DNA of 64,000 nt, taken from IMG/VR virus record IMGVR_UViG_3300005056_000001, positions 1 to 64,000 of that record, one strand, 5' to 3'. The position numbers and the translations under genes were made by a program. The notes under the pieces were generated by a model that ran no database searches, was not told where the DNA came from, and saw nothing but the letters and a program-made list of their open reading frames with translations. Below, one piece after another: positions 1,173 to 63,328 of the stretch (its first letter is position 1; each line of letters opens with the position of its first letter).

Positions 1173-1237
1173 AGGTATGTTTTTTATGTATGTACCATTG
1201 CATTGATACATATACAAAAACCATTAAACCTAAACAC

Positions 1238-2236
1238 ATGAAAGACACTTCCATATTGGACGACGATTTTATCATACAAACACACGATGTAAAGACAAGC
1301 GAAAATGAATCGTTTCTAAACCCCACAAACAACAACATTGACATACTATCCATATGTGGCGCATCCACGGCAGGAGCAGGTGTTAGCGGTGCCTGTGAAT
1401 ACGTCACAGACAAGGGATACAAACCAACACACCTAATAACAGTAAGTTATGGCAGTGTTATATCCTTACCATTGCTTCTTGGGAAAAAAGAGGCAATCAA
1501 GCAGGTCAGCCTAAACCTGAATCACAAACAATTCTTTAGAGTGTCCCCTATGACAAAAAAAGGCAACATATCTTTTTGGGGTCTAATGAGGATTCTTGGT
1601 TCTGTTGTGGCACCCAATAAAATAAAATCCATAGGGGTACAAGATGTCCAAGGATTATTAAAGACGCACGTTTCAAAAAAAGAGTTCTATGACTACCAAA
1701 AGTCCGACAAGGCAGTGATATATATTTGTACAGTCAAGGCCTCCACAATGGAGCCTGTTCTGTTTAATATCAAGGATCGTAGTGTTACATACCAAAGATA
1801 CCTAGACATCGTTTCTGCAAGTTCTAGGATCCCTGTTTGGACACAGCCAATGGTTATTGACGGCGAGGAGTATTATGACGGAGGAATTACAGACATAAAT
1901 GCCTCATGTCTTCTGTTAGACAAGTTCAAGGACAGCGGTCAGAAAGTGAATGAATTGGTTTCAATCTACCCTTTTGGACGTGGCAACAAAGTAGAAGGCA
2001 AGACCATAAAAGGCGTGTTTGGGGCTATCTTTTGGCTCATAGAAACCCTCATAAAGAATGTCGGCAAGAACGACACACTCGAAGAAATGTTTAAGTGTAA
2101 AAACAGGGACATAAAACTTTCACAAATTCACATACCAAAAATATTGGACAGTCTTTATGATGTGGACAAGCCTAGGCTCCTGAAGCTTTATAATTTGGGG
2201 TTGCAATCTGCCAAGGATAATTTTAGAAAATGGTAA
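1238..2236 (+). CDS. patatin-like phospholipase
   Basis: Oxyanion loop ILSICGASTAG, nucleophile elbow TVSYG (variant GxSxG), ASSRIP, and catalytic YYDGG; start at MKDTS. Confidence 0.85.
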   Translation: MKDTSILDDDFIIQTHDVKTSENESFLNPTNNNIDILSICGASTAGAGVSGACEYVTDKGYKPTHLITVSYGSVISLPLLLGKKEAIKQVSLNLNHKQFFRVSPMTKKGNISFWGLMRILGSVVAPNKIKSIGVQDVQGLLKTHVSKKEFYDYQKSDKAVIYICTVKASTMEPVLFNIKDRSVTYQRYLDIVSASSRIPVWTQPMVIDGEEYYDGGITDINASCLLLDKFKDSGQKVNELVSIYPFGRGNKVEGKTIKGVFGAIFWLIETLIKNVGKNDTLEEMFKCKNRDIKLSQIHIPKILDSLYDVDKPRLLKLYNLGLQSAKDNFRKW

Positions 2237-2747: not shown

Positions 2748-3335
2748 CTACACAATCAATCGTTTTTGATAAAATTCAATCTTTTCCTTAATGCTTGCAT
2801 TGTGCAACTCGATGTCAATGGGGATAATTGTTAATTTATCACAACTCAGTGCCTCGTCAAAGGCTTCTTTTTTTGTATAGACACCTGCATTGGTTTTGTA
2901 AGTAGTGTACCCGCATGAATTATCACAATAGTAAGAATAGCCTTTTTTGACGTAGCAAAATTTAACTGAGTCGTTGTCTAGGATTTCATTCAAGTCCGAC
3001 ACACGTTTTCGCTCGGTCTTAATTTTTTCTATACTTTCTAGTGTGAGTTCCTTTTTCTCAAACGAATACATGTCCATTTCCTTGGCCCTCAAGACAGGAA
3101 TATTAAATAGCGTAATCTCCGAACCACTATCCGTGTCAACCATGGTCTCGTATTTTATTTGCTTGAGGATATCATTTTTGGCCTTGCCCCTGTCTGTGGC
3201 ATATCCATAGAATTCGGAGTGAAAAAATCCATCCTCGATTTTTGACAGGTTTAGCCTCCAACACTTGCTGACCATTTTATATTCTTGTGTCTTGTTTTCT
3301 TGTGCCGTATCCGTTGAATAATTAGTCGTATCCAT
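2748..3335 (-). CDS. hypothetical phage protein
   Basis: 195-aa ORF with a C-terminal YY.DNS.GYT...AGVYT..EA motif. Confidence 0.7.
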   Translation of the reverse strand: MDTTNYSTDTAQENKTQEYKMVSKCWRLNLSKIEDGFFHSEFYGYATDRGKAKNDILKQIKYETMVDTDSGSEITLFNIPVLRAKEMDMYSFEKKELTLESIEKIKTERKRVSDLNEILDNDSVKFCYVKKGYSYYCDNSCGYTTYKTNAGVYTKKEAFDEALSCDKLTIIPIDIELHNASIKEKIEFYQKRLIV

Positions 3336-3458: not shown

Positions 3459-3947
3459 TTATACATCTCTTTTTAATTCCTCCCTTGTCCAAACAATATC
3501 CACCAATTCCTTTCCGAAATCGACAATGTATCCGTCGGGTCTAATTTCTTCGATAGATCCTGAACACTCCCATTCGCCAAGATGTCCACCGCTTCTTGAT
3601 ACAATCTCGGCATTGGGGAGATTAACTTTAACCGACTCACCCATCAACAACACGTCCTCGTGGTTGGCGGCATTTTCTTTTGTCTGAAAGTCCACAAATT
3701 CCCATCTGATACAATCATACCCCGAAAACTCGTTGAGTCTATGAAAATTGTAGTGTTTCCACCTTGTAATAAAGCAAGTGATGTCTCTTGCCAAATATTC
3801 GGGTTTGTCGCTTGAATACGCATGTTTTGCGATTACTATTAGTGGTGCGGACAACAAGTCTTTTGTTGCCACAAAGTCAAAATATACTAGAGACTTTTTA
3901 TACTCTTCTTTGCGTTCTTCGCTTGTGTAGAATGGTTCTTTAATCAC
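3459..3947 (-). CDS. hypothetical protein
   Basis: ORF in a co-oriented run. Confidence 0.65.
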   Translation of the reverse strand: MIKEPFYTSEERKEEYKKSLVYFDFVATKDLLSAPLIVIAKHAYSSDKPEYLARDITCFITRWKHYNFHRLNEFSGYDCIRWEFVDFQTKENAANHEDVLLMGESVKVNLPNAEIVSRSGGHLGEWECSGSIEEIRPDGYIVDFGKELVDIVWTREELKRDV

Positions 3948-3957
3948 GATTTATTTT

Positions 3958-4491
3958 TTAATTGGTTTTAAATTGAATATATGTTGCGACATCCTTTCGT
4001 CCTGTTTGTCTCTCTATTGCCTTTATGATTGCTTTTTGACAAGGTTCTGTCCAAATTTCTACATGTCCATTACGGTGAACATCCAACATTAGAGGGTATA
4101 TATATTCATCAAAATCCAAACCGCTCACATCGTGTTGCATCAGCACCGCAGCAGCTACGATTTTGGCAGCGGCCTCGTCACCCTCATTGGTAGCCATATT
4201 ATAATCCTCTACAACTTCACCAATAATAGGCTCCTGAGAATCCCAACCATATTTCCATACAATGTTAGCAACACCAATAAATGACGAAAGGTGTGGACGC
4301 TGATACTTGTTAAATCCTTCCATAAACAGTGCGGTCGCCTTTGCTAATTCGCTAGGTGTCACATTGCCTTCCATTTGTGTGACCGTGACCCCGTTTGATA
4401 GGTCTACATTTGTTCTGAACTCGAATTTCCCCATTAAACGAACCACCTGTCGTTGGCATTCTTTTGAATCGTATTTATAATCGTTATTCAT
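3958..4491 (-). CDS. hypothetical protein
   Basis: ORF in a co-oriented run. Confidence 0.7.
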   Translation of the reverse strand: MNNDYKYDSKECQRQVVRLMGKFEFRTNVDLSNGVTVTQMEGNVTPSELAKATALFMEGFNKYQRPHLSSFIGVANIVWKYGWDSQEPIIGEVVEDYNMATNEGDEAAAKIVAAAVLMQHDVSGLDFDEYIYPLMLDVHRNGHVEIWTEPCQKAIIKAIERQTGRKDVATYIQFKTN

Positions 4492-6452: not shown

Positions 6453-6749
6453 TTACTCTTCCAAACCAAGTTTAGCTAGAATAGCAGAAACTTTATTAGA
6501 TATTAATTTCGCAACACTTTCTTCTACCTTTGTCTGTATTTTGTAGGTTGACACTTGGTTTCTTATCGCATGCCTTAATACCTCGGTTGTTTGTTTTTCA
6601 ACTTCGCCTACGATATCGAAATTATCAATAGCCTTTTTTACACCCTCCTGTATTTTTGCCTCAATGTCTTTGTTATTCAGCACAACCTGACTCATGATAC
6701 TTGATGCTGCCACTTCTATCTCAAACTTTACTTTAGTCTCACCCTTCAT
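6453..6749 (-). CDS. hypothetical helical protein
   Basis: ORF. Confidence 0.7.
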   Translation of the reverse strand: MKGETKVKFEIEVAASSIMSQVVLNNKDIEAKIQEGVKKAIDNFDIVGEVEKQTTEVLRHAIRNQVSTYKIQTKVEESVAKLISNKVSAILAKLGLEE

Positions 6750-6791: not shown

Positions 6792-7856
6792 CTAGAATAG
6801 CAATGAAATATCCACTCCCGTCTGTGCAAGAACCTCTCTTTCGATCTCGTCCCAAATGAATATATTATTGATTTGGGAATGCCCCTCGTCGATCAAGTCT
6901 CCTAGGCGGGCTTTGATTCCATCTCTAATACTGTGGGTGTCCTTGTTGTCTGCACATACAGTACTAATCATTGCATGCAACACAAACATTGATTCCCTGT
7001 TGTCCATCCCATAGGTCGGGAGCAAGATATCGTCAACCGAAATGAATTGCCCATGTTGTCCATATCTAAAAAGAATATTCCTGAAGTTGGGTATTTTTTT
7101 GATGTTTTGTTTGTGGGTGACGTTCCAATGCTCCATAAACAGTGTCACCGAAATTGCCAACTTGGTGGGTGATGGTTCCTTGGTAACCGCAACGATCACC
7201 GTGGGACTAGCAAGATCGTCTACGCCATAAAACTCATATCCGTTGGTATTGAAGGTAATAGGAGTACCCTTTTCTTTTTCTACAATTTCGCCGTCGCTTA
7301 TATCGCCAACACTGCTCAAATATCTATTGGCAGAATCTTTTGAGTCAAAATAGCCATCGTCTGTTGTTAGTATGGATATCTCTTTCCCGTCAATAAAAAT
7401 GGTGCTATCTGTAAAGTCCTCTACCATGACAGGAGACAATTTTGTTTTAAGATCCTCGTTGTTTAGGTTGTTTAGGTGATACCAAACATACAACGTTTTT
7501 TTGTTGTACGGACAACCCTCGCAAATCTCGGTATTTCTTAGACTTCTTCTTCCGCTGTCGTCTGATGTGTTAATTAGGCTATTAACAAATGCATATGCAT
7601 TTTGTTGTTGGTCAAGATTGCTGTATAGTTTAGGAATGTATTCCTTCCATGCCACAACCTGTTCCATGCTCTTTAACAAGGCCGACACAGGGGATTGGGT
7701 GTTGCTCATGGCATCATTTGAATAGGAGTTTAAAAATGTATCATCCTCTGTGTCATAACATATCGTAAATTCTCTCCACCCGCCCTGACACTTGGCATCG
7801 CCTAATTTTGAATGTATCTCCCATTGTTCCCAAATATCACAGACTCTTTTTTCCAT
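6792..7856 (-). CDS. hypothetical protein
   Basis: 354-aa ORF, translationally coupled to the upstream ORF. Confidence 0.8.
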   Translation of the reverse strand: MEKRVCDIWEQWEIHSKLGDAKCQGGWREFTICYDTEDDTFLNSYSNDAMSNTQSPVSALLKSMEQVVAWKEYIPKLYSNLDQQQNAYAFVNSLINTSDDSGRRSLRNTEICEGCPYNKKTLYVWYHLNNLNNEDLKTKLSPVMVEDFTDSTIFIDGKEISILTTDDGYFDSKDSANRYLSSVGDISDGEIVEKEKGTPITFNTNGYEFYGVDDLASPTVIVAVTKEPSPTKLAISVTLFMEHWNVTHKQNIKKIPNFRNILFRYGQHGQFISVDDILLPTYGMDNRESMFVLHAMISTVCADNKDTHSIRDGIKARLGDLIDEGHSQINNIFIWDEIEREVLAQTGVDISLLF

Positions 7857-49989: not shown

Positions 49990-50108
49990 ATAAAACAGGT
50001 TTTTCCGAATGCTTCATGACTATCGGGGGTGTTTATTATGTACCAAAAAGAAATAACCATCCAAAATTGTTGTTGGATGGTTATTTCTTTTTCTCTAGGT
50101 GTTGTTTG

Positions 50109-50621
50109 TTATACATTAAACACAAGCCAAGCGATCGTTATGTCTTCCGATATTTCTTTACAATTAAGTGTGAATTTGTTTTCGTGTTCATATTTTAACC
50201 TTTTACGCACTACCTGTAATAAATAGGAAGGAGATCTATCTGTATTATCACTATCCAACTCAACAATTTTGTGTGCGAATAGCAACTGAATGGCATTGTC
50301 AATAATACGTGTTGTGTTACCAACAAATTGACCCTCAATTAAAAGAACATCATCGGTTACAGACACAGGGTCAAGAGGAGGCAATATTCGTAGATAATTA
50401 ACCTCGTCTTTTTTGTCAATATTTTCGACCATCCTATACATTTCAAAGTTTTCTAAAAATGCTTTCATTGGTGCAATATCGGATACCTTAATGATTTCGT
50501 CAAACTGTTCAACTCCTATTTTTTGTGTATAGTAGCTATTTGTATTGGTATCAACAAATTTTGCAATTAAATAGTCCCCCTCGGTGACTACATTGTTGAT
50601 CTTCATTACTCGTGTTTCCAT
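50109..50621 (-). CDS. hypothetical protein
   Basis: ORF; start METRVM. Confidence 0.65.
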   Translation of the reverse strand: METRVMKINNVVTEGDYLIAKFVDTNTNSYYTQKIGVEQFDEIIKVSDIAPMKAFLENFEMYRMVENIDKKDEVNYLRILPPLDPVSVTDDVLLIEGQFVGNTTRIIDNAIQLLFAHKIVELDSDNTDRSPSYLLQVVRKRLKYEHENKFTLNCKEISEDITIAWLVFNV

Positions 50622-50690
50622 GTTTATTTTTTTACTATAACGGTATTGTGTCGTTAAAGTTGTAAAATAATAAAACAAGAAGAGTTATTG

Positions 50691-50767
50691 TAGCGGAGAT
50701 GGGACTTGAACCCACATGTGACCAATTACGCTTTCAACGTGGTATAAGCACGAGACGTTACACCGCC
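50691..50767 (-). tRNA. non-canonical tRNA-like gene, anticodon TAT (Ile?), with displaced D-arm elements
   Basis: Acceptor GGCGGTG/CTCCGCT plus A73; T arm GTGGG-TTCAAGT-CCCAT; anticodon hairpin CGTG-CTTATAC-CACG only 8 nt after the acceptor strand. Confidence 0.6.
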
Positions 50768-50885
50768 ATGTAGTATAGCAGGGCTGATGATAGATTTATC
50801 ATCAGCCTTTAGTATCGTGTATGTATTGTGCTTGGTCATGATTTGTATTTTTAAATAGGTCTGTGTCGTATCTGTTATAAACTAG

Positions 50886-50972
50886 TAGAAGAAGTGGGAG
50901 TCGAACCCACACGAGTCGTTAGCTCCGAACGGTTTTCAAAACCGTGGCCACCGCCCATTGGCTTGCTCTTCC
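50886..50972 (-). tRNA. tRNA-Ser(TGA)
   Basis: ACGGT-TTTGAAA-ACCGT anticodon arm; long variable arm; TTCGA T loop. Confidence 0.85.
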
Positions 50973-51283
50973 TAATCTACAATACAACAACAAATTTCTT
51001 CAACTAATTGGGTGTCGTTGACAACATATGCGTTTCTTGATGGTAAAAATAAGAATGCCTTTGAATTGTTGACCCGTTCGATAAAGTCTGTTGTTATTAA
51101 ACCGTCTCTTACAGAAAAAATTTCTAGACTTTTCATTACACTTTCGGCAACAGCACTCACGGTTTCGTGTTTTTCAACAACTCTATTTTCGGAATCGCTC
51201 CAAAATACATGGGGACAGGAAACCTCAATAATCAATTCTTCCTTAATTCCATATTTTCCGACCAAATCATTCTTAGTAATCAT
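50972..51283 (-). CDS. hypothetical protein within tRNA cluster
   Basis: ORF. Confidence 0.6.
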   Translation of the reverse strand: MITKNDLVGKYGIKEELIIEVSCPHVFWSDSENRVVEKHETVSAVAESVMKSLEIFSVRDGLITTDFIERVNNSKAFLFLPSRNAYVVNDTQLVEEICCCIVD

Positions 51284-51354
51284 ATTGTATTTTGTTTTGT
51301 TTTGTTTTGTTAATAATCACATAACGCAATTATACAATATTTATTCAAAACTTG

Positions 51355-51437
51355 TGGGGGTAGAAGGACTCGAACCTACTCAGTCATAGACACTAGATTT
51401 ACAGTCTAGCACGGCTCTCCAACTCCGTCGCACTCCC
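51355..51437 (-). tRNA. tRNA-Tyr(GTA)
   Basis: CTAGA-CTGTAAA-TCTAG anticodon arm; long variable arm. Confidence 0.9.
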
Positions 51438-51545
51438 ATATTAACATGGTATATTTTTTCGATTATGACACTTTGTTTGGTTAAGCTATCATGGAAACTT
51501 TCCACGGAAGGGCTTCCACCTTCTTGTCTTCATAAAAGTTTCTTG

Positions 51546-51620
51546 GGCACATGACGGGATTCGAACCCGTGACCCTCGGTACCACAAACCGATGCTCTAA
51601 CCGTCTGAGCTACACGAACC
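51546..51620 (-). tRNA. tRNA-His(GTG)
   Basis: TCGGT-TTGTGGT-ACCGA anticodon arm; G-1 and C73. Confidence 0.9.
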
Positions 51621-51631
51621 ATATATTTTAG

Positions 51632-51704
51632 TGGAGCAGGAGGGACTTGAACCCACATCCTTCGCATTGCAAATGCGATGCTCAGCCAATTGAGCTACTG
51701 TCCC
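51632..51704 (-). tRNA. tRNA-Ala(TGC)
   Basis: TCGCA-TTTGCAA-TGCGA anticodon arm; G3:U70; A73. Confidence 0.92.
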
Positions 51705-51834
51705 GAATCCGACGCTATACTAAGGCAAAAACTGCCAATGACATGAAGCCAACGTTCATATAAGTCAGAAATTACTTTTTGTATCACTAATACAAAGGTT
51801 TTTACACAAAAGTTCCCCAACAATATAATTAAAC

Positions 51835-52125
51835 AAAAAAAACACCAACAAGCTAGTTGTTGGTGTTTAAAAAGAAGTTGTCATACGAGAAGTTAGAAAC
51901 GGTAAACACTATACCGCTCCCCCATACAACTTAAAAACAGGCGCAAGGTAATAAAAACAGGCGCAAACAGGCGAAAGTTTCTAAAACAGGCGCAAGAAGC
52001 AAAAAAAATCTTGATCGTTAGGATTTCGTGGGCTACACACGCCTTTTATTATAACCTTCAACCTCCTTTCGGTCAGTCTACTGAGCTTTGTTTCTTTATC
52101 AAAACAACCAAGACTTTTATATCAC
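51835..52125 (-). ncRNA. candidate structured ncRNA with four TT(G/T)CGCCTGTTT repeats
   Basis: -7-like element at ~52131-52138; no credible ORF; 3' stem-loop; terminator at ~51835-51870. Confidence 0.4.
51935..51995. repeat. AAACAGGCG(C/A)AA x4
   Basis: Copies start at 51935, 51955, 51965 and 51984. Confidence 0.9.
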
Positions 52126-52238
52126 TGTCACAATATATAACAACTTTATACAGTAAACGAATTTTTTGGGCTTTATCTTGAAAAAAAGATTGTTTTTTGT
52201 CATAGTCCGTAAAATAAGCGTTCTTATAGAAAGAAATA

Positions 52239-52718
52239 ATGACAACACAATTAATAAACCATCTTTCAAGCGAGTCTGAGCGTGTCGGTGCCTTGGATAC
52301 CATTTACTCACAAATGATTGTATCAAAAAGCCTGTCTGCCTATCCAAACTTTTCGGATTGGCTTTATAAAAAGGTTGGCCTTGGTATAGTCATGAACCAA
52401 AGGAGTATTGTGCTAAAATACATAAACAAAAGGCTTGTGGGCTTTGTCATACTAAAACATCACAAAGAGCATAAATTATGCACCTTTTTTATACTCGACA
52501 ACTATCGTAAGCAAGGAATTGGTCATAAAATGATGACGGAATCCATGGCATTTTTGAATACATTCGGGAATGTGCCTATTACGATAACAATGTCCGTGTT
52601 TGTTGTTTCGGATTTTAACAAAATTCTTACGAATCACGGTTTTGTCTTTGATTATGTCGTTCAATCCGAATACACAAAGGATGTTCCTGAGTACCACCAC
52701 ATCAGGCCCTTGTCCTAA
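52239..52718 (+). CDS. GNAT acetyltransferase
   Basis: KLCTFFILDNYRKQGIG acetyl-CoA motif A; HGF motif B. Confidence 0.8.
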   Translation: MTTQLINHLSSESERVGALDTIYSQMIVSKSLSAYPNFSDWLYKKVGLGIVMNQRSIVLKYINKRLVGFVILKHHKEHKLCTFFILDNYRKQGIGHKMMTESMAFLNTFGNVPITITMSVFVVSDFNKILTNHGFVFDYVVQSEYTKDVPEYHHIRPLS

Positions 52719-53363: not shown

Positions 53364-54143
53364 CTATACTCCCAATGTTCTTGTATAATTTTGAAATCTA
53401 AGCTTCACGATCTTGGTACGGTCACTATTCCTTAAGACAACACCCTCCGACCTCATTTTTGCGCTATCAGACAGAGCCACCAAGGTTTTTGGAACAACCG
53501 TATTAAGATAGTCCAAAATGGTTTGGTGATCGAAATTTTTGATATCAACAGGGAGCTGAGGAACCTGTGCAAAATTGTATTTTTTACAAAATTCTGTGAG
53601 TTCGGTGTTTGTGAGGAAGTCGTGTCCATACACAATACCGTTGTCTGTTTCGTATTCTCGGAATGACGAAATTTCTTTGATATCCAACTCAAGAATAGAC
53701 AAATCCTTGATTGTTATTACATCAAAAATACGACAGCCGTATTCATTCTTTGTTCCGTACTGTTTTGAGGCCTTACCAACCGATCCACCATAGAGCTCGC
53801 CATAAATGACGGTCAATTCCTTGAAGTCTGTCGGGAAGGTAACCATTTTTCTGAGTTCGTCAACGATATCCAAGGCAGAATTACGACATAGGTCTTTTGA
53901 ATATGTCAAAATCTCTTTTCTTGAACCAATCAAATATTCATTCCCCCAACAGATCATACGAAAATTTGTGCCATCAACCTTTTCCGAGCCACACAGCTCA
54001 TCGTCCAACGAAATGTCGGTTGCAAGCTCATTCGTCAACATACCCCTGTCACCGATTTTGTGGAGCGTTTTGATTGACGGATACTTGGTCAACGTATTAA
54101 TCTTGTCGATGCCATATTTTAAAACAAGTTCTTTTAATTTCAT
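53364..54143 (-). CDS. ATP-dependent RNA ligase (Rnl2-like nucleotidyltransferase)
   Basis: Motif I EKVDGTN, III YGELYG, IIIa IFD, IV EGVVLR, V KLR. Confidence 0.85.
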   Translation of the reverse strand: MKLKELVLKYGIDKINTLTKYPSIKTLHKIGDRGMLTNELATDISLDDELCGSEKVDGTNFRMICWGNEYLIGSRKEILTYSKDLCRNSALDIVDELRKMVTFPTDFKELTVIYGELYGGSVGKASKQYGTKNEYGCRIFDVITIKDLSILELDIKEISSFREYETDNGIVYGHDFLTNTELTEFCKKYNFAQVPQLPVDIKNFDHQTILDYLNTVVPKTLVALSDSAKMRSEGVVLRNSDRTKIVKLRFQNYTRTLGV

Positions 54144-56515: not shown

Positions 56516-57433
56516 CTAAGAGAGGTATACCATGCTATCCACAAACCTCTTTGTTTTTGGTGGCATATATTCAATGTCATTACAGAACACATCCATACGC
56601 TCTAGCCGATCTGTGATAATGTTGTCCATTGTCTCAGGGAACGCCTTAATGTAATTATTGTCAAGAAATAACTTTTCTATGCTGTCTAGACCACCAATAG
56701 AGTCAGGAATTGTACTTATTCTGTTATCCGAGAAACACAAAAACGTTACATTTTTCAAATTTCCGATATTTGAAGGAATAGCCTCCAACTGATTAAAACG
56801 AAATATTGCATACTCAAGACGTTCTAAATCACAAAAGCTATCAGGAATCTTTTTTAACTTTGTTCCTTGGCAATAAAAATATACCAACGATTTGAGGTTG
56901 CCTAGGTTTTCGGATAGACGTTCTATGTTGTTGCGTCCAATATTTAAAGTGTACAACCTAGGCATTTCATAAATACTATCAGGAATACCTGTCAAAAAAT
57001 TATCGTCCAAGTCTAAACGTTCTAAATTCTCAAGATTACCGATACATTTATTAACAGACGACATCCTGTTGTTTCTAAGACAAAGAGATGTTAAACATCC
57101 AAGGTTGCCTATGGTGTCGGGAAGTGTTGTTATATGATTATTACTAAGGTGTAATTGTTTTAAGTTAGTTAAAAGCTCTATGCTGTCAGGAACATATTTC
57201 ACTCTATTCGAAGTTATTGAAAGCTCCTCCATGTCGTGTATATACATGACCAATGACTTCGGGACACAAGCCCTAGTGTCAAAAATATCATTATCCTCAA
57301 GCCACCCATTCAGCTTTTTATATGACCCTAAATCCAATTCGATATCGTTCGACTTTGCCAACTCAAACCCCAATTCTATATTCGACTCGTCGCCTGTTTT
57401 GAGCAAAGACATAATTTTTTCTTTTCTGTACAT
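56516..57433 (-). CDS. leucine-rich repeat protein
   Basis: About 9-10 repeats of a 23-aa LxxLxLxxNxLxxLPxxIxxL pattern. Confidence 0.9.
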   Translation of the reverse strand: MYRKEKIMSLLKTGDESNIELGFELAKSNDIELDLGSYKKLNGWLEDNDIFDTRACVPKSLVMYIHDMEELSITSNRVKYVPDSIELLTNLKQLHLSNNHITTLPDTIGNLGCLTSLCLRNNRMSSVNKCIGNLENLERLDLDDNFLTGIPDSIYEMPRLYTLNIGRNNIERLSENLGNLKSLVYFYCQGTKLKKIPDSFCDLERLEYAIFRFNQLEAIPSNIGNLKNVTFLCFSDNRISTIPDSIGGLDSIEKLFLDNNYIKAFPETMDNIITDRLERMDVFCNDIEYMPPKTKRFVDSMVYLS

Positions 57434-60361: not shown

Positions 60362-63328
60362 TTACACAATCTTAGAAGTTCCCCATGACAGACTTTTCTT
60401 GCCGTCATTGTCCTCGGTGCGCTCCATTAGATTATCAAACAAAGTCGAATCAATTCCAAATTCTTCAAATACTCCATCAAGCGTGGCGGTGTCTTTGGTT
60501 TTGATAAACTCGTTAATTTTTTCTTTGTCCATTAGCAGGGCCAAGATGTTTTTTTCTATTGTTCCGTCATACGACACGAAATGTACATCAGTATGATTCA
60601 CAGAATTATAACGAATGAAACGGAAATAAAACTGTTCCATTCTTGGGATATTCCATTGAAGACCCTCGATGATTACCTTGTCACAAGTCGGAATGTTAAC
60701 CGATGACTTCAGGGATTGTTGTGTGCATACCAAAATACCATTCTCTGTGGCCTCGAATCTGTCTAGGATTGGTTGACGCTTGTCGATACTTACGTCCCCT
60801 GTAATCACAAAAATTTGACGCTCAGGAAAAAGAATTGTAAGGTTTTCGACATATAGTTTTATGGTTTCTTTTCGGGTACATCCAATTGCAACTTTTTCGT
60901 CAAATTTTTGACACAATTGGGCAATTTTATAAAACTTGGTTGGTAGGTCTCCCTTGTAATCCGAAAATGAATTCGGGGTACTACATGCCTTGTACAACAA
61001 TTGCATTTGGCGAACTATTCTGAGGGCAGCATCTTTTCGTGTGCTGCCTGTTGACCCATAAAACTCGCTGATTATGCGGTGGAACTCACGGATTATCACG
61101 CCATAAATTCTTGCCTCATCGGCTGTTTGGTTCACATACTCTGTGTGTACCGTGAATTTTTCTCCTGCAATTTCTTTGAATTTTCTTGTTATGATTGATT
61201 GGTCAATGATCGAGACCAATTTGTCTTGATTGAAAACGTCTTGGTTTTGTTTCTTGATTCCAAAAACGGTTGCCTTGGAAGGATTAAAACAAGACTTGAA
61301 TTGTCCGAATCCCAAACGTGCCTTGTATGGCTGCATGTGGTTTTTATTGTCACGACTTTTTATGTCGCCTTCCTTGTTTTGGACATAGGTCATTTTACAG
61401 GAGTCCAACATATTCACAGAATTATTGAACAACAATTCTAATTGTGGGTATAGTTCTGTGATATTGTTTCTTGTGGTGGTTCCTGTTGCCAAAAACTTTC
61501 TTTTAACACGTCTAAAAATGTCACGGCTTGCACGAGATCGTTTTGATGTGTTTGAACAAATTTCGTCGGACTCATCCATGACAAGACAAACCTTATTACT
61601 CAACGACTTAACCAATTTTTGTAGCTCTTTTTTGAACTTGATAAGCATATTAAAACTAATCAACACAATAGAACCACTGTTTAAAATATGGCTTCTTTTG
61701 GTTATTATGGTATACTCCTCGCCCTGTGTATTCAAAAACTCTGTCCATGTTGTTTTAATGGCCAAAGAAGGAGCCACTATAAATGTTTTTTTGACTTTTG
61801 GTTGGTTGTATTTTGCAAATGCATAACACCCGCCCGTTTTTCCGCAACCCTGTTGCCAATTACAGATTGAATATTGTTTTTGTAAAAAAAGGTTTAGGTC
61901 ATGCGCCTGTATATTATTAAACTTACAGGTCACGGTTTTTTTGTTGCCTAATTTGTCGGTGTCTTCTCTCAGAAAACTAAAATCTTTTAACCATGCAGCA
62001 ATAGACTCACTTTGGGTCATTTCTGAAAATGGTGTTGTTATCTTTTTATTCTCTGCGATCTTGCGTGTGATCAGTTTATTGTATGGGTGGTCAAGATCTT
62101 TTGTCGGTATAAGGTTGGTACCCAACACCAAGTCGCTAAGGGAATACTTTTTCTTTTGTGCCTTTGGGGCCTTACCCTTGACAACAAAGCCATGACGGTG
62201 TTTTACGACTCTTAGAGTCTTGTTGGCCGCCTTTTTATTTTGGGTCTTAACAATTCTTTTTAGATAGGCAAGAACCTTGTTTTCGGTAAGCATTTTCTTG
62301 CTCCATTCGCTGTCCTCCATGCCCATTGGCTTGGTCTGTGTATTGAATTTTTCGATATACGAAATCGCACTGTCCAACTTGGCAGATATTTCGCCGTGTT
62401 GCTTGATTTCAAAAAGGTATTTCTTGACTCTAAACCCAAAATCATCATTTGTTAGCGACTTGTTAAACTCAAGACGTAACGCCGATTTAATATTGTGGCG
62501 CAATGCCAATTTCTTGGAAATTTCTGATTTTGTGCTAACACTATTCGTGTAAGGAACATCCTTGAGATGTTCGGACTTTTTTTGAAGATAGATAACCTTG
62601 GTATTATAATTCTTTACCCCCAAGGCACCAAAGGCATCATTTGTCAGTTGATATTGACCCACGAAATTAAACATCCTGTCTAGGTCATTTATTTGAGACT
62701 TATAATACATCTCGTCGCCAAGGTACGAAGTCGGAACAATGGCCGCCACAACCCCGCCATTTTTTAACATCTTGGCACACATTTTAAAAAACAGTGCATG
62801 GCTTCTGACATGCGTGTTTGTTTCGGTGTCGAACCACTCAAGACTAAAAGGAGGATTGCCCAACACGACATCAAACTTATTTTCGATGGTATTGTTTGGC
62901 AGACTTGCCTCGGTAAAGTCTGCATCAGGATACAGACGGTTGGCAACCTGCACAGACTTTGGACAAATATCCATCCCATGAAAAACGGATTCGTTAGGCA
63001 CAAAATTACAAAACACACCCATTCCACATGTCGGATCCACAATCAATTCGTTTGAGGCAAGACCCACGATATCCACAATATCACTTGCAATCATGGCAGG
63101 TGTATAAAATTGGCCATTCTCGACCTCCTTTTTTGCTGCCGAGTACTCATAGTAATTACGATAGTCTTTAAATTCTAAACCATGCAACCCTCCATCACCC
63201 GTATAGGCATTAAAAATTTGCTCATTGCTAATGGCAGCGGAATCCAATTGGATTGCCATTAAGATCTTACTATTGACCGTTTTGCGGTGGTCTTGTGGTA
63301 TTGTATCGGTAAGGATATTGTATTTCAT
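60362..63328 (-). CDS. N6-adenine DNA methyltransferase / SNF2-type helicase fusion (DarB-like)
   Basis: GQFYTP, DPTCGMG, NPPF; helicase QQGCGKT, MDESD, ATGT, SVNI, QFYFRFIR. Confidence 0.8.
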   Translation of the reverse strand: MKYNILTDTIPQDHRKTVNSKILMAIQLDSAAISNEQIFNAYTGDGGLHGLEFKDYRNYYEYSAAKKEVENGQFYTPAMIASDIVDIVGLASNELIVDPTCGMGVFCNFVPNESVFHGMDICPKSVQVANRLYPDADFTEASLPNNTIENKFDVVLGNPPFSLEWFDTETNTHVRSHALFFKMCAKMLKNGGVVAAIVPTSYLGDEMYYKSQINDLDRMFNFVGQYQLTNDAFGALGVKNYNTKVIYLQKKSEHLKDVPYTNSVSTKSEISKKLALRHNIKSALRLEFNKSLTNDDFGFRVKKYLFEIKQHGEISAKLDSAISYIEKFNTQTKPMGMEDSEWSKKMLTENKVLAYLKRIVKTQNKKAANKTLRVVKHRHGFVVKGKAPKAQKKKYSLSDLVLGTNLIPTKDLDHPYNKLITRKIAENKKITTPFSEMTQSESIAAWLKDFSFLREDTDKLGNKKTVTCKFNNIQAHDLNLFLQKQYSICNWQQGCGKTGGCYAFAKYNQPKVKKTFIVAPSLAIKTTWTEFLNTQGEEYTIITKRSHILNSGSIVLISFNMLIKFKKELQKLVKSLSNKVCLVMDESDEICSNTSKRSRASRDIFRRVKRKFLATGTTTRNNITELYPQLELLFNNSVNMLDSCKMTYVQNKEGDIKSRDNKNHMQPYKARLGFGQFKSCFNPSKATVFGIKKQNQDVFNQDKLVSIIDQSIITRKFKEIAGEKFTVHTEYVNQTADEARIYGVIIREFHRIISEFYGSTGSTRKDAALRIVRQMQLLYKACSTPNSFSDYKGDLPTKFYKIAQLCQKFDEKVAIGCTRKETIKLYVENLTILFPERQIFVITGDVSIDKRQPILDRFEATENGILVCTQQSLKSSVNIPTCDKVIIEGLQWNIPRMEQFYFRFIRYNSVNHTDVHFVSYDGTIEKNILALLMDKEKINEFIKTKDTATLDGVFEEFGIDSTLFDNLMERTEDNDGKKSLSWGTSKIV

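Follow-up and report, generated by a model that had tools for sequence, protein, structure and literature searches.

A family of phage tRNA-like genes in which the two halves of the D-arm are split around the anticodon arm

The locus

The window, i.e. the whole 64,000 nucleotide stretch of DNA analysed here (positions 1 to 64,000 of IMG/VR record IMGVR_UViG_3300005056_000001), has a GC content of 38% and harbors an array of four canonical tRNA genes on the minus strand (50885-51704), as called by ARAGORN and Rfam. In brief, the array consists of tRNA-Ala (51631-51704), tRNA-His (51545-51619), tRNA-Tyr (51354-51437) and tRNA-Ser(UGA) (50885-50972). A 77 nt tRNA-like gene with anticodon UAU is located 117 nt downstream of tRNA-Ser(UGA) on the same strand, at positions 50691-50767. 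The initial annotation described this gene as having a normal acceptor stem, T arm and A73, but a D-like segment placed after the anticodon arm instead of before it. We confirmed this observation; the sequence reads exactly as described.

Read 5' to 3' on the minus strand, the gene starts with the 5' strand of a 7 bp acceptor stem, GGCGGUG (50761-50767), which pairs with 50692-50698 and contains a G1.U72 wobble and a U6.U67 mismatch. This is followed by U8 and A9 (50759-50760), ACGU (50755-50758), a single C (50754) and the anticodon arm (50737-50753). The anticodon arm has the stem UCGUG/CACGU, with U27.U43 on top, and the loop CUUAUAC, with U33, a purine at position 37 and the anticodon UAU at 50744-50746. 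Then follow UGAAA (50732-50736), GCGU (50728-50731) and AAUUGGUCACAU, the latter consisting of the D-loop-like AAUUGGUCA (50719-50727) and CAU (50716-50718). The gene ends with the T arm GUGGG-UUCAAGU-CCCAU (50699-50715), the acceptor 3' strand CUCCGCU and the discriminator A73 (50691); the next base is C. ACGU, at element positions 10-13, can pair with GCGU, at positions 37-40, as A-U, C-G, G-C and U.G.

ARAGORN does not call the gene. The Rfam tRNA model RF00005 aligns it end to end at 27.8 bits, just below the gathering score of 29, by deleting the D arm and inserting 18 nt in the variable region. Canonical cloverleaf parses attempted by hand gave no D hairpin with a GG loop before the anticodon arm, where only ACGU-C is found. 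The single-sequence fold is not more stable than that of shuffled sequences (MFE -16.3 kcal/mol, z = +0.41), and its MFE structure differs from the family consensus described below. The support for the structure thus comes from comparative data and not from thermodynamics.

The initial annotation stated that ATA codons appear common, and this holds: ATA makes up 32% of Ile codons, or 24.6 per 1000 codons, in 42 long ORFs of the window. A consensus scan of positions 50000-52400 for promoters and terminators, covering only sigma-70-type promoters and with the host unknown, gave nothing decisive. Pfam searches with 25 window proteins gave mostly no hits; those found were an RNA ligase, HTH, GNAT, LRR, a methylase-helicase fusion and patatin, none of which gives a host assignment. 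A megablast search with 11 kb around the gene against GenBank phages gave no match, the phage itself being novel.

Relatives in phages and bacterial contigs

A blastn search of GenBank phages found the same 77-78 nt layout in crAss-like phage cr130_1, in bajarodcaudo virus 1 and in an unannotated gap of the tRNA array of Kehishuvirus tikkala, a cultured crAss-like phage of Bacteroides cellulosilyticus (laboratory host strain WH2), where the gene lies at OQ198717 95577-95653 and the anticodon is GAU. An exact-pattern scan of IMG/VR anchored on the 3' half gave 53 loci, one of which is on the window's own contig of 368 kb, a jumbo phage. A second pattern, anchored on the 5' half and leaving the anticodon, the GG, the T arm and the 3' end free, gave at least 117 loci. 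Together, the pattern scans found more than 150 viral contigs with this architecture. The contigs range from a few kb to 413 kb, and include many of about 100 kb, the size of the crAss-like records among the hits, and many over 200 kb.

A scan of one genome per bacterial species gave 38 loci, of which about 30 are real according to the covariance model described below. Most of these are MAG contigs labelled Bacteroidota, some are labelled Planctomycetota, Omnitrophota, Chloroflexus or Erysipelotrichaceae, and one is from an isolate, Chryseolinea lacunae Jin1. A search with an Arg-type query also found copies in the cultured Streptomyces phages Mildred21, Braelyn, Persimmon, WhereRU and Navo, and in about 25 Vibrio phage genomes, those with a named host being from Vibrio crassostreae. 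The Mildred21 copy lies at MF155946 91367-91442, and phage 184E37.3a is one of the Vibrio crassostreae phages.

The genes are treated inconsistently in databases. They are unannotated in Kehishuvirus and the Vibrio phages, whereas the Mildred21 copy is annotated as tRNA-Phe(gaa). The family alignment reads this copy as Arg-UCG, and the GenBank record thus appears to mislabel it. ARAGORN leaves 185 of 187 family members uncalled, and the other two are overlapped only by odd calls, a 97 nt Leu-CAA and an 87 nt Ile-TAT. A scan of 18 loci with the Rfam gathering score only confirmed that canonical neighbours score 49-75 bits, and does not give the number of family members that pass the tRNA threshold.

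A conserved helix encloses the anticodon hairpin

We aligned 38 distinct members with MAFFT (alignment A1). Without guidance, RNAalifold predicted four helices in this alignment: the acceptor stem, the T stem, the anticodon stem and a 3 bp helix that joins positions 11-13 to 37-39 and encloses the anticodon hairpin. A covariance model (R1) built from this alignment scores family members at 64-97 bits, whereas canonical tRNAs in the same loci score 35 bits or less. The window copy scores 87.1 bits (E about 6e-20), which is far beyond chance.

Covariation was examined in 87 distinct sequences. Two pairs of the enclosing helix were not constrained by any search pattern. The middle pair is UA in 37, CG in 32, GC in 16, AU in 1 and UG in 1, and the next pair is CG in 70, GC in 13, UG in 2, AU in 1 and UA in 1, with no unpaired cell in either. 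The third pair is an invariant C-G that was partly fixed by the patterns. The fourth position forms no standard pair in 86 of 87 sequences, where it reads U.U, and is A-U only in the window; the helix thus has only three Watson-Crick pairs in most members. All seven acceptor pairs covary, with 94% of cells paired, and four of five T stem pairs covary, with 98% of cells paired. Four pairs of the anticodon stem covary strongly, whereas positions 27.43 form a standard pair in only 7 of 87 and are U.U in most members. For the whole structure 88% of cells pair, compared to 57% in shuffles and at most 51% when partners are slid. The covariation score is 0.80, against 0.19 in shuffles (0 of 500 reach it) and 0.18 or less when partners are slid. 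It should be noted that this alignment was fitted to the model, although the MAFFT alignment gives the same picture, and that the sequences are related, so that the shuffle figures overstate independence.

The lack of homologs, the lack of covariation, and homologs that are ordinary tRNAs degraded by deletion had been named beforehand as outcomes that would speak against the gene; all three were tested and none applies.

Correspondence to a normal tRNA

Read in order, the elements can be mapped point by point onto a normal tRNA. The acceptor 5' strand corresponds to positions 1-7 and the following UA to U8 and A9. In the family, U/A-C-N-N, ACGU in the window, corresponds to positions 22-25, the 3' strand of a D stem, and C to position 26. 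The anticodon arm corresponds to positions 27-43 and the following N-G to positions 44 and 45, whereas the AAA connector has no canonical counterpart. N-N-G-U, GCGU in the window, corresponds to positions 10-13, the 5' strand of a D stem. It is followed by A-A-U-U-G-G-N-N-A, a textbook D loop equivalent to positions 14-21, which in the window is A14 A15 U16 U17 G18 G19 U20 C20a A21. CAU corresponds to positions 46-48 and is conserved as CAU (rarely CAC) in a further alignment, A3. The T arm, the acceptor 3' strand and the discriminator correspond to positions 49-73. This is a 74 nt tRNA body in which segments 10-21 and 22-45 are exchanged, plus three As.

Several conserved blocks were required by the search patterns. 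Conservation of the 5' half (U8, A9, C26 and GAAA, all invariant) therefore rests on alignment A1, where the pattern did not constrain them, and conservation of the 3' half rests on the second pattern set, where GG is present in 103 of 104 members and the UUCRA T loop is kept. As a direct test, we exchanged the two segments back in silico and dropped the AAA. ARAGORN then called 84 of 87 sequences as ordinary cloverleaf tRNAs with the same anticodon, compared to 0 of 87 unmodified sequences and 41 and 32 of 87 when the cut points were shifted by three columns.

Anticodons, identity marks and genomic context

In the scan where the anticodon was left free, 107 distinct sequences gave the anticodons UAU (72), GAU (13), CAU (11) and Arg UCU (6), CCU (2), ACG (1) and UCG (1). 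One further sequence was an obvious chance hit. The base after GG, equivalent to position 20, is U in 83 of 83 Ile members and A in 10 of 10 Arg members. The discriminator is A in 94 of 94 Ile and CAU members, and G in 6 of 10 Arg members. These marks match the bacterial identity sets, in which Arg uses A20, the main ArgRS determinant, C35, U/G36 and A/G73, and A73, A35, U36 and U20 belong to the Ile set (PMC9976931). Other E. coli Ile elements (C4-G69, U12-A23 and C29-G41) are not conserved in the family; the hosts are not E. coli. C follows the discriminator in 102 of 104 members, and full CCA is encoded in 15 of 104.

The genes are embedded in tRNA arrays. The nearest canonical tRNA is a median 27.5 nt away and is on the same strand in 118 of 122 cases. 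A canonical tRNA with the same anticodon is found in the same locus in only 1 of 90 (UAU), 1 of 18 (GAU), 0 of 9 (UCU) and 0 of 3 (CCU) cases. Among 36 loci with at least 8 canonical tRNAs, canonical UAU is present in 0 of 20 loci that hold a permuted UAU, against 7 of 16 without one (Fisher p = 0.0014). The corresponding value for GAU is p = 0.014, and both figures are optimistic since the loci are related. Two of the loci in our collection, which are denoted by L and a number, illustrate this. L171 has 20 canonical tRNAs but no canonical Ile, and two permuted genes (GAU and UAU) fill gaps in its array. L188 has canonical Arg CCU, CCG and ACG and a permuted Arg-UCU.

Some variants were found. 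A second sequence type with the same topology and anticodon GAU occurs in L067, L115, L159, L171 and L186; its stem is ACC/GGT, with a compensated ATC/GAT in L115. The Vibrio phage version has a 12 nt connector in place of NGAAA. L132 and L055 hold longer variants, L055 also holds a remnant (7393-7455) that keeps only the 3' half, and L180 has an insertion in the T loop.

A proposed tRNA-Ile with exchanged inner segments

Based on these observations, we suggest with fair confidence that the gene encodes a working elongator tRNA-Ile(UAU) of a jumbo phage, in which segment 22-45 comes first, followed by the AAA connector and segment 10-21. In this view the D stem still forms but encloses the anticodon hairpin, and the D-loop GG still lies where it can reach the T loop. 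The sequence family, the covarying helix, the anticodon range, the correlation of identity marks with anticodons, the position in arrays and the anticodon complementarity are what our analysis establishes; expression, processing, charging, use on the ribosome, the three-dimensional fold and any advantage of the rewiring are matters of inference, and function as a tRNA is well supported but only indirectly. Transcription together with the neighbouring array and normal end-processing are inferred from the position and the 3' end of the gene, and we infer that host IleRS charges the tRNA using A73, U20 and the anticodon, and that it reads AUA without lysidine.

We further infer that the molecule folds into the usual L shape through the same tertiary contacts (U8-A14, A15-U48, and G18/G19 with the T loop). 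In a normal tRNA, as in yeast tRNA-Phe, the stacking layers run 15-48, 8-14(-21), 13-22(-46), 12-23(-9), 11-24, 10-25(-45) and 26-44. The three new joins (9 to 22, 45 through AAA to 10, and 21 to 46) each link bases in the same or adjacent layers around the deep groove of the D stem, within one or two stacking layers of each other. The same L shape should therefore be reachable with changed connectivity, although this argument rests on textbook tRNA geometry and not on a model or a structure. The strand that runs up from the anticodon stem would continue into the D-stem 5' strand and the D loop, placing G18 and G19 at the elbow, as usual.

The family is probably of single origin. A tandem duplication of region 10-48, followed by loss of the first 10-21 and the second 22-45, would give exactly this order with a 3 nt connector. 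In this view, the family switched from Ile to Arg by changing base 35 and base 20, and supplies decoders for AUA, AUY, AGA, AGG and CGN in phage tRNA sets. The switch would need only A35C and U20A, as A73 is tolerated by ArgRS, which would explain why only these two amino acids appear. The near-constant mismatch at 27.43 leaves a 4 bp anticodon stem, and a 2026 study links such stems to relaxed third-position reading in tRNA-Trp (PMC13092985), which may or may not apply here.

The interpretation given in the initial annotation, a topologically rearranged Ile tRNA that bypasses TilS or evades tRNA-targeting defences, or a tRNA decoy, is partly supported. The rearranged topology, the D-equivalent stem enclosing the anticodon hairpin, followed by a D-loop-like AAUUGG, and the Ile assignment fit the evidence. 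A link to bypassing TilS is not supported as stated, since the same scaffold carries GAU, CAU and four Arg anticodons (UCU, CCU, ACG and UCG), and the UAU anticodon and the rewiring are thus separate features. A role in evading defences or modification is possible. However, only Ile and Arg members are rewired while their array neighbours are canonical, and any such pressure would have to be specific to those tRNAs. No benefit of the rewiring is evident.

We consider it slightly more likely than not that phages of many lineages use an undescribed class of translation-competent tRNAs, overlooked by gene finders, in which the core is topologically rewired yet the canonical L shape is rebuilt, and which arose once in a tRNA-Ile and spread to Arg by a two-base identity switch. 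The rewiring may be kept because it changes how host tRNA nucleases, modification enzymes or the decoding centre treat these rare-codon readers. The cloverleaf order of tRNA is among the most conserved features in biology; the exceptions described shorten or lose arms, and none is known to re-order them in the mature molecule. A widespread, selected, internally permuted tRNA would show that synthetases, RNase P, elongation factor and the ribosome read the three-dimensional shape and a few bases and not the strand connectivity. It would also give structural biologists a natural test case for tRNA core folding and synthetic biologists a new scaffold, and cultured phage-host pairs carry the family. 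On the practical side, phage tRNA counts and codon-supply analyses miss these genes.

Alternative explanations

An unlikely but not excluded alternative is a D-armless tRNA with a long, interrupted anticodon arm and a 12 nt single-stranded linker, which works in translation without rebuilding the canonical core, the resemblance of AAUUGG to a D loop reflecting ancestry and not function. The Rfam tRNA model aligns the gene this way, and functional D-armless tRNAs exist in mitochondria (PMC7609411). Against this, GG is kept, U8, A9, A14 and A15 are conserved, and the base after GG switches together with the Ile-to-Arg anticodon change, exactly as position 20 does in canonical tRNAs. Furthermore, the length and layer count equal those of a normal tRNA, and swapping the segments back gives canonical cloverleaves in most sequences.

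A tRNA mimic not used in translation, acting as a decoy or sponge for a host tRNA-cleaving defence or a tRNA-modifying enzyme, or having another non-coding role, is also unlikely. Phage tRNAs are known to counter tRNA-targeting defences (PMC10264068, PMC11464382), and an RNA ligase gene (PF09414, 53364-54143) lies about 1.6 kb from the tRNA array in the window, with another beside the Chryseolinea lacunae copy. However, tblastn with both proteins, a search of limited sensitivity, found the ligase in only 2 of 194 loci and none in the other 192, and we rejected it as a general partner. A decoy needs neither covarying acceptor and T stems, nor a discriminator and position 20 base matched to the anticodon, nor an encoded C or CCA, and it would not need anticodons that avoid duplicating co-resident canonical tRNAs.

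It is very unlikely that the transcript is a precursor that is cut and re-ligated into the normal order, by analogy with the permuted tRNA genes of red algae, although the nearby RNA ligases would fit. This would need three cuts and three ligations inside a folded RNA, no bulge-helix-bulge or other processing motif is conserved, the acceptor ends are already in normal order, most loci have no detectable RNA ligase, and covariation of the enclosing helix points to selection on the permuted fold itself. A decayed pseudogene or a chance tRNA-like sequence, as the ARAGORN and Rfam results and the L055 remnant might suggest, is refuted by more than 100 distinct sequences from unrelated phage lineages and environments that keep the same 77 nt layout with compensatory changes in all four helices.

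Comparison with known tRNAs

Literature searches, including text searches within a 2020 review of non-canonical tRNAs and the 2026 study of 4 bp anticodon stems, found no description of this topology, although many subscription papers were outside their reach and absence is not proof. Canonical bacterial and phage tRNA-Ile and tRNA-Arg (RF00005) share with the family the 7 bp acceptor stem, the discriminator A73 (or G73 for Arg), U8, a D-loop motif A-R-Y-Y-G-G-N-(N)-A, a 7 nt anticodon loop with U33 and R37, a UUCRA T loop, the identity marks U20 (Ile) or A20 (Arg) and the location in tRNA arrays. They differ in the order of segments 10-21 and 22-45 and in the AAA, so that the D stem of the family encloses the anticodon arm instead of forming its own hairpin, and the secondary structure is a three-way and not a four-way junction. 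The family does not correspond to class II tRNAs, as there is no D arm in the normal place and the 12 nt stretch after the enclosing helix shows no conserved pairing.

The tRNA-Ile(UAU) of Mycoplasma mobile and of the Bacillus subtilis suppressor strain lacking TilS (PMC3575796, PMC3919564) likewise reads AUA with a UAU anticodon instead of lysidine-modified CAU. Those are ordinary cloverleaf tRNAs of cells, whereas here UAU is only one of several anticodons carried on the rewired scaffold, and reading of AUA is inferred.

In the circularly permuted tRNA genes of Cyanidioschyzon merolae and other algae (reported by Soma et al. 2007; permuted tRNA genes are mentioned in PMC4090602) the segment order in the gene also differs from that of the canonical tRNA. 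There the whole gene is reportedly permuted, with the 3' half before the 5' half and with processing signals, and the mature tRNA is canonical after circularisation and cleavage. Here the acceptor strands are at the gene ends in normal order, the swap is internal, and the covarying helix implies that the mature RNA stays permuted.

D-armless mitochondrial tRNAs, such as mt-tRNA-Ser(AGY) and nematode tRNAs (PMC7609411), also lack a D hairpin between the acceptor and anticodon stems and are missed or scored low by standard tRNA finders. Those are shortened, flexible and have lost the D loop and its GG, whereas this family keeps full length and all D-arm sequence elements, relocated. The allo-tRNAs with 8/4 or 9/3 acceptor and T stems (Mukai et al., PMC5389517) are likewise a non-standard tRNA architecture discovered in metagenomic sequence, but they change helix lengths within the usual cloverleaf order and are not permuted.

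Genomic context of the tRNA array

An RNA ligase gene (Pfam PF09414) is encoded at window 53364-54143 on the minus strand, about 1.6 kb upstream of the tRNA array. In Chryseolinea lacunae, the copy of the permuted tRNA family sits in a tRNA island beside another PF09414 ligase and an HD plus AAA_33 kinase-like protein (locus L183, 322-1428 on the plus strand and 3743-4381 on the minus strand), which looks like an RNA-repair pair. A tblastn search against the other 192 loci gave no such ligase.

Between tRNA-Ser and the permuted tRNA we found a perfect 11-bp hairpin, GGCUGAUGAUA / UAUCAUCAGCC, with a 4-nt loop (window 50782-50807, minus strand). The hairpin is not followed by a U tract, and it may be a processing or protein-binding site. 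The neighbouring tRNA-Ser(UGA), at 50885-50972 on the minus strand, scores higher on the Rfam tRNA-Sec model (38.9 bits, below the threshold of 47 for that model) than on the general tRNA model, which is probably only an effect of its long variable arm.

Other recognisable genes in the window encode an N6-adenine methylase fused to a DEAD/Helicase_C helicase (60362-63328, minus strand, 988 aa), a leucine-rich-repeat protein (56516-57433, minus strand, 305 aa) and a patatin-like phospholipase (1190-2236, plus strand, 348 aa). Most of the large ORFs, including one of 1750 aa, have no Pfam match.

Variant and probably misannotated family members

The family member of Streptomyces phage Mildred21 (locus L193, 2495-2570; MF155946, 91367-91442) is annotated in GenBank as tRNA-Phe(gaa), gene 169. 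The family alignment, however, puts UCG (Arg) at positions 34-36, with A after GG, and a canonical tRNA-Phe(gaa) exists 2.3 kb away. The GenBank annotation is probably a mis-assignment.

One viral contig of 14.5 kb, L055, holds 16 canonical tRNAs together with three odd elements that ARAGORN misses. In brief, these are a 91-nt element with the permuted layout and a possible GUA (Tyr) anticodon (3236-3326), a 92-nt permuted UAU element with an extra hairpin after the D-loop-like stretch (6622-6713), and a copy that keeps only the 3' half of the family sequence (7393-7455). A further 90-nt family copy, found on the minus strand of a 417 kb Bacteroidetes MAG contig (L180, 3721-3810), carries a palindromic insertion inside the T loop, and could be a pseudogene or contain an intron or a mobile insertion.

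Two further features were observed across the family. The base right after the discriminator (window 50690) is C in 102 of 104 distinct members, although the full CCA is encoded in only 15 of them, which suggests a constraint on 3'-end maturation. Positions 27 and 43 at the top of the anticodon stem (window 50753 and 50737) form a standard pair in only 7 of 87 members and read U.U in most sequences, leaving a 4-bp stem. Anticodon stems of 4 bp have been linked to relaxed decoding in tRNA-Trp in a 2026 paper (PMC13092985).
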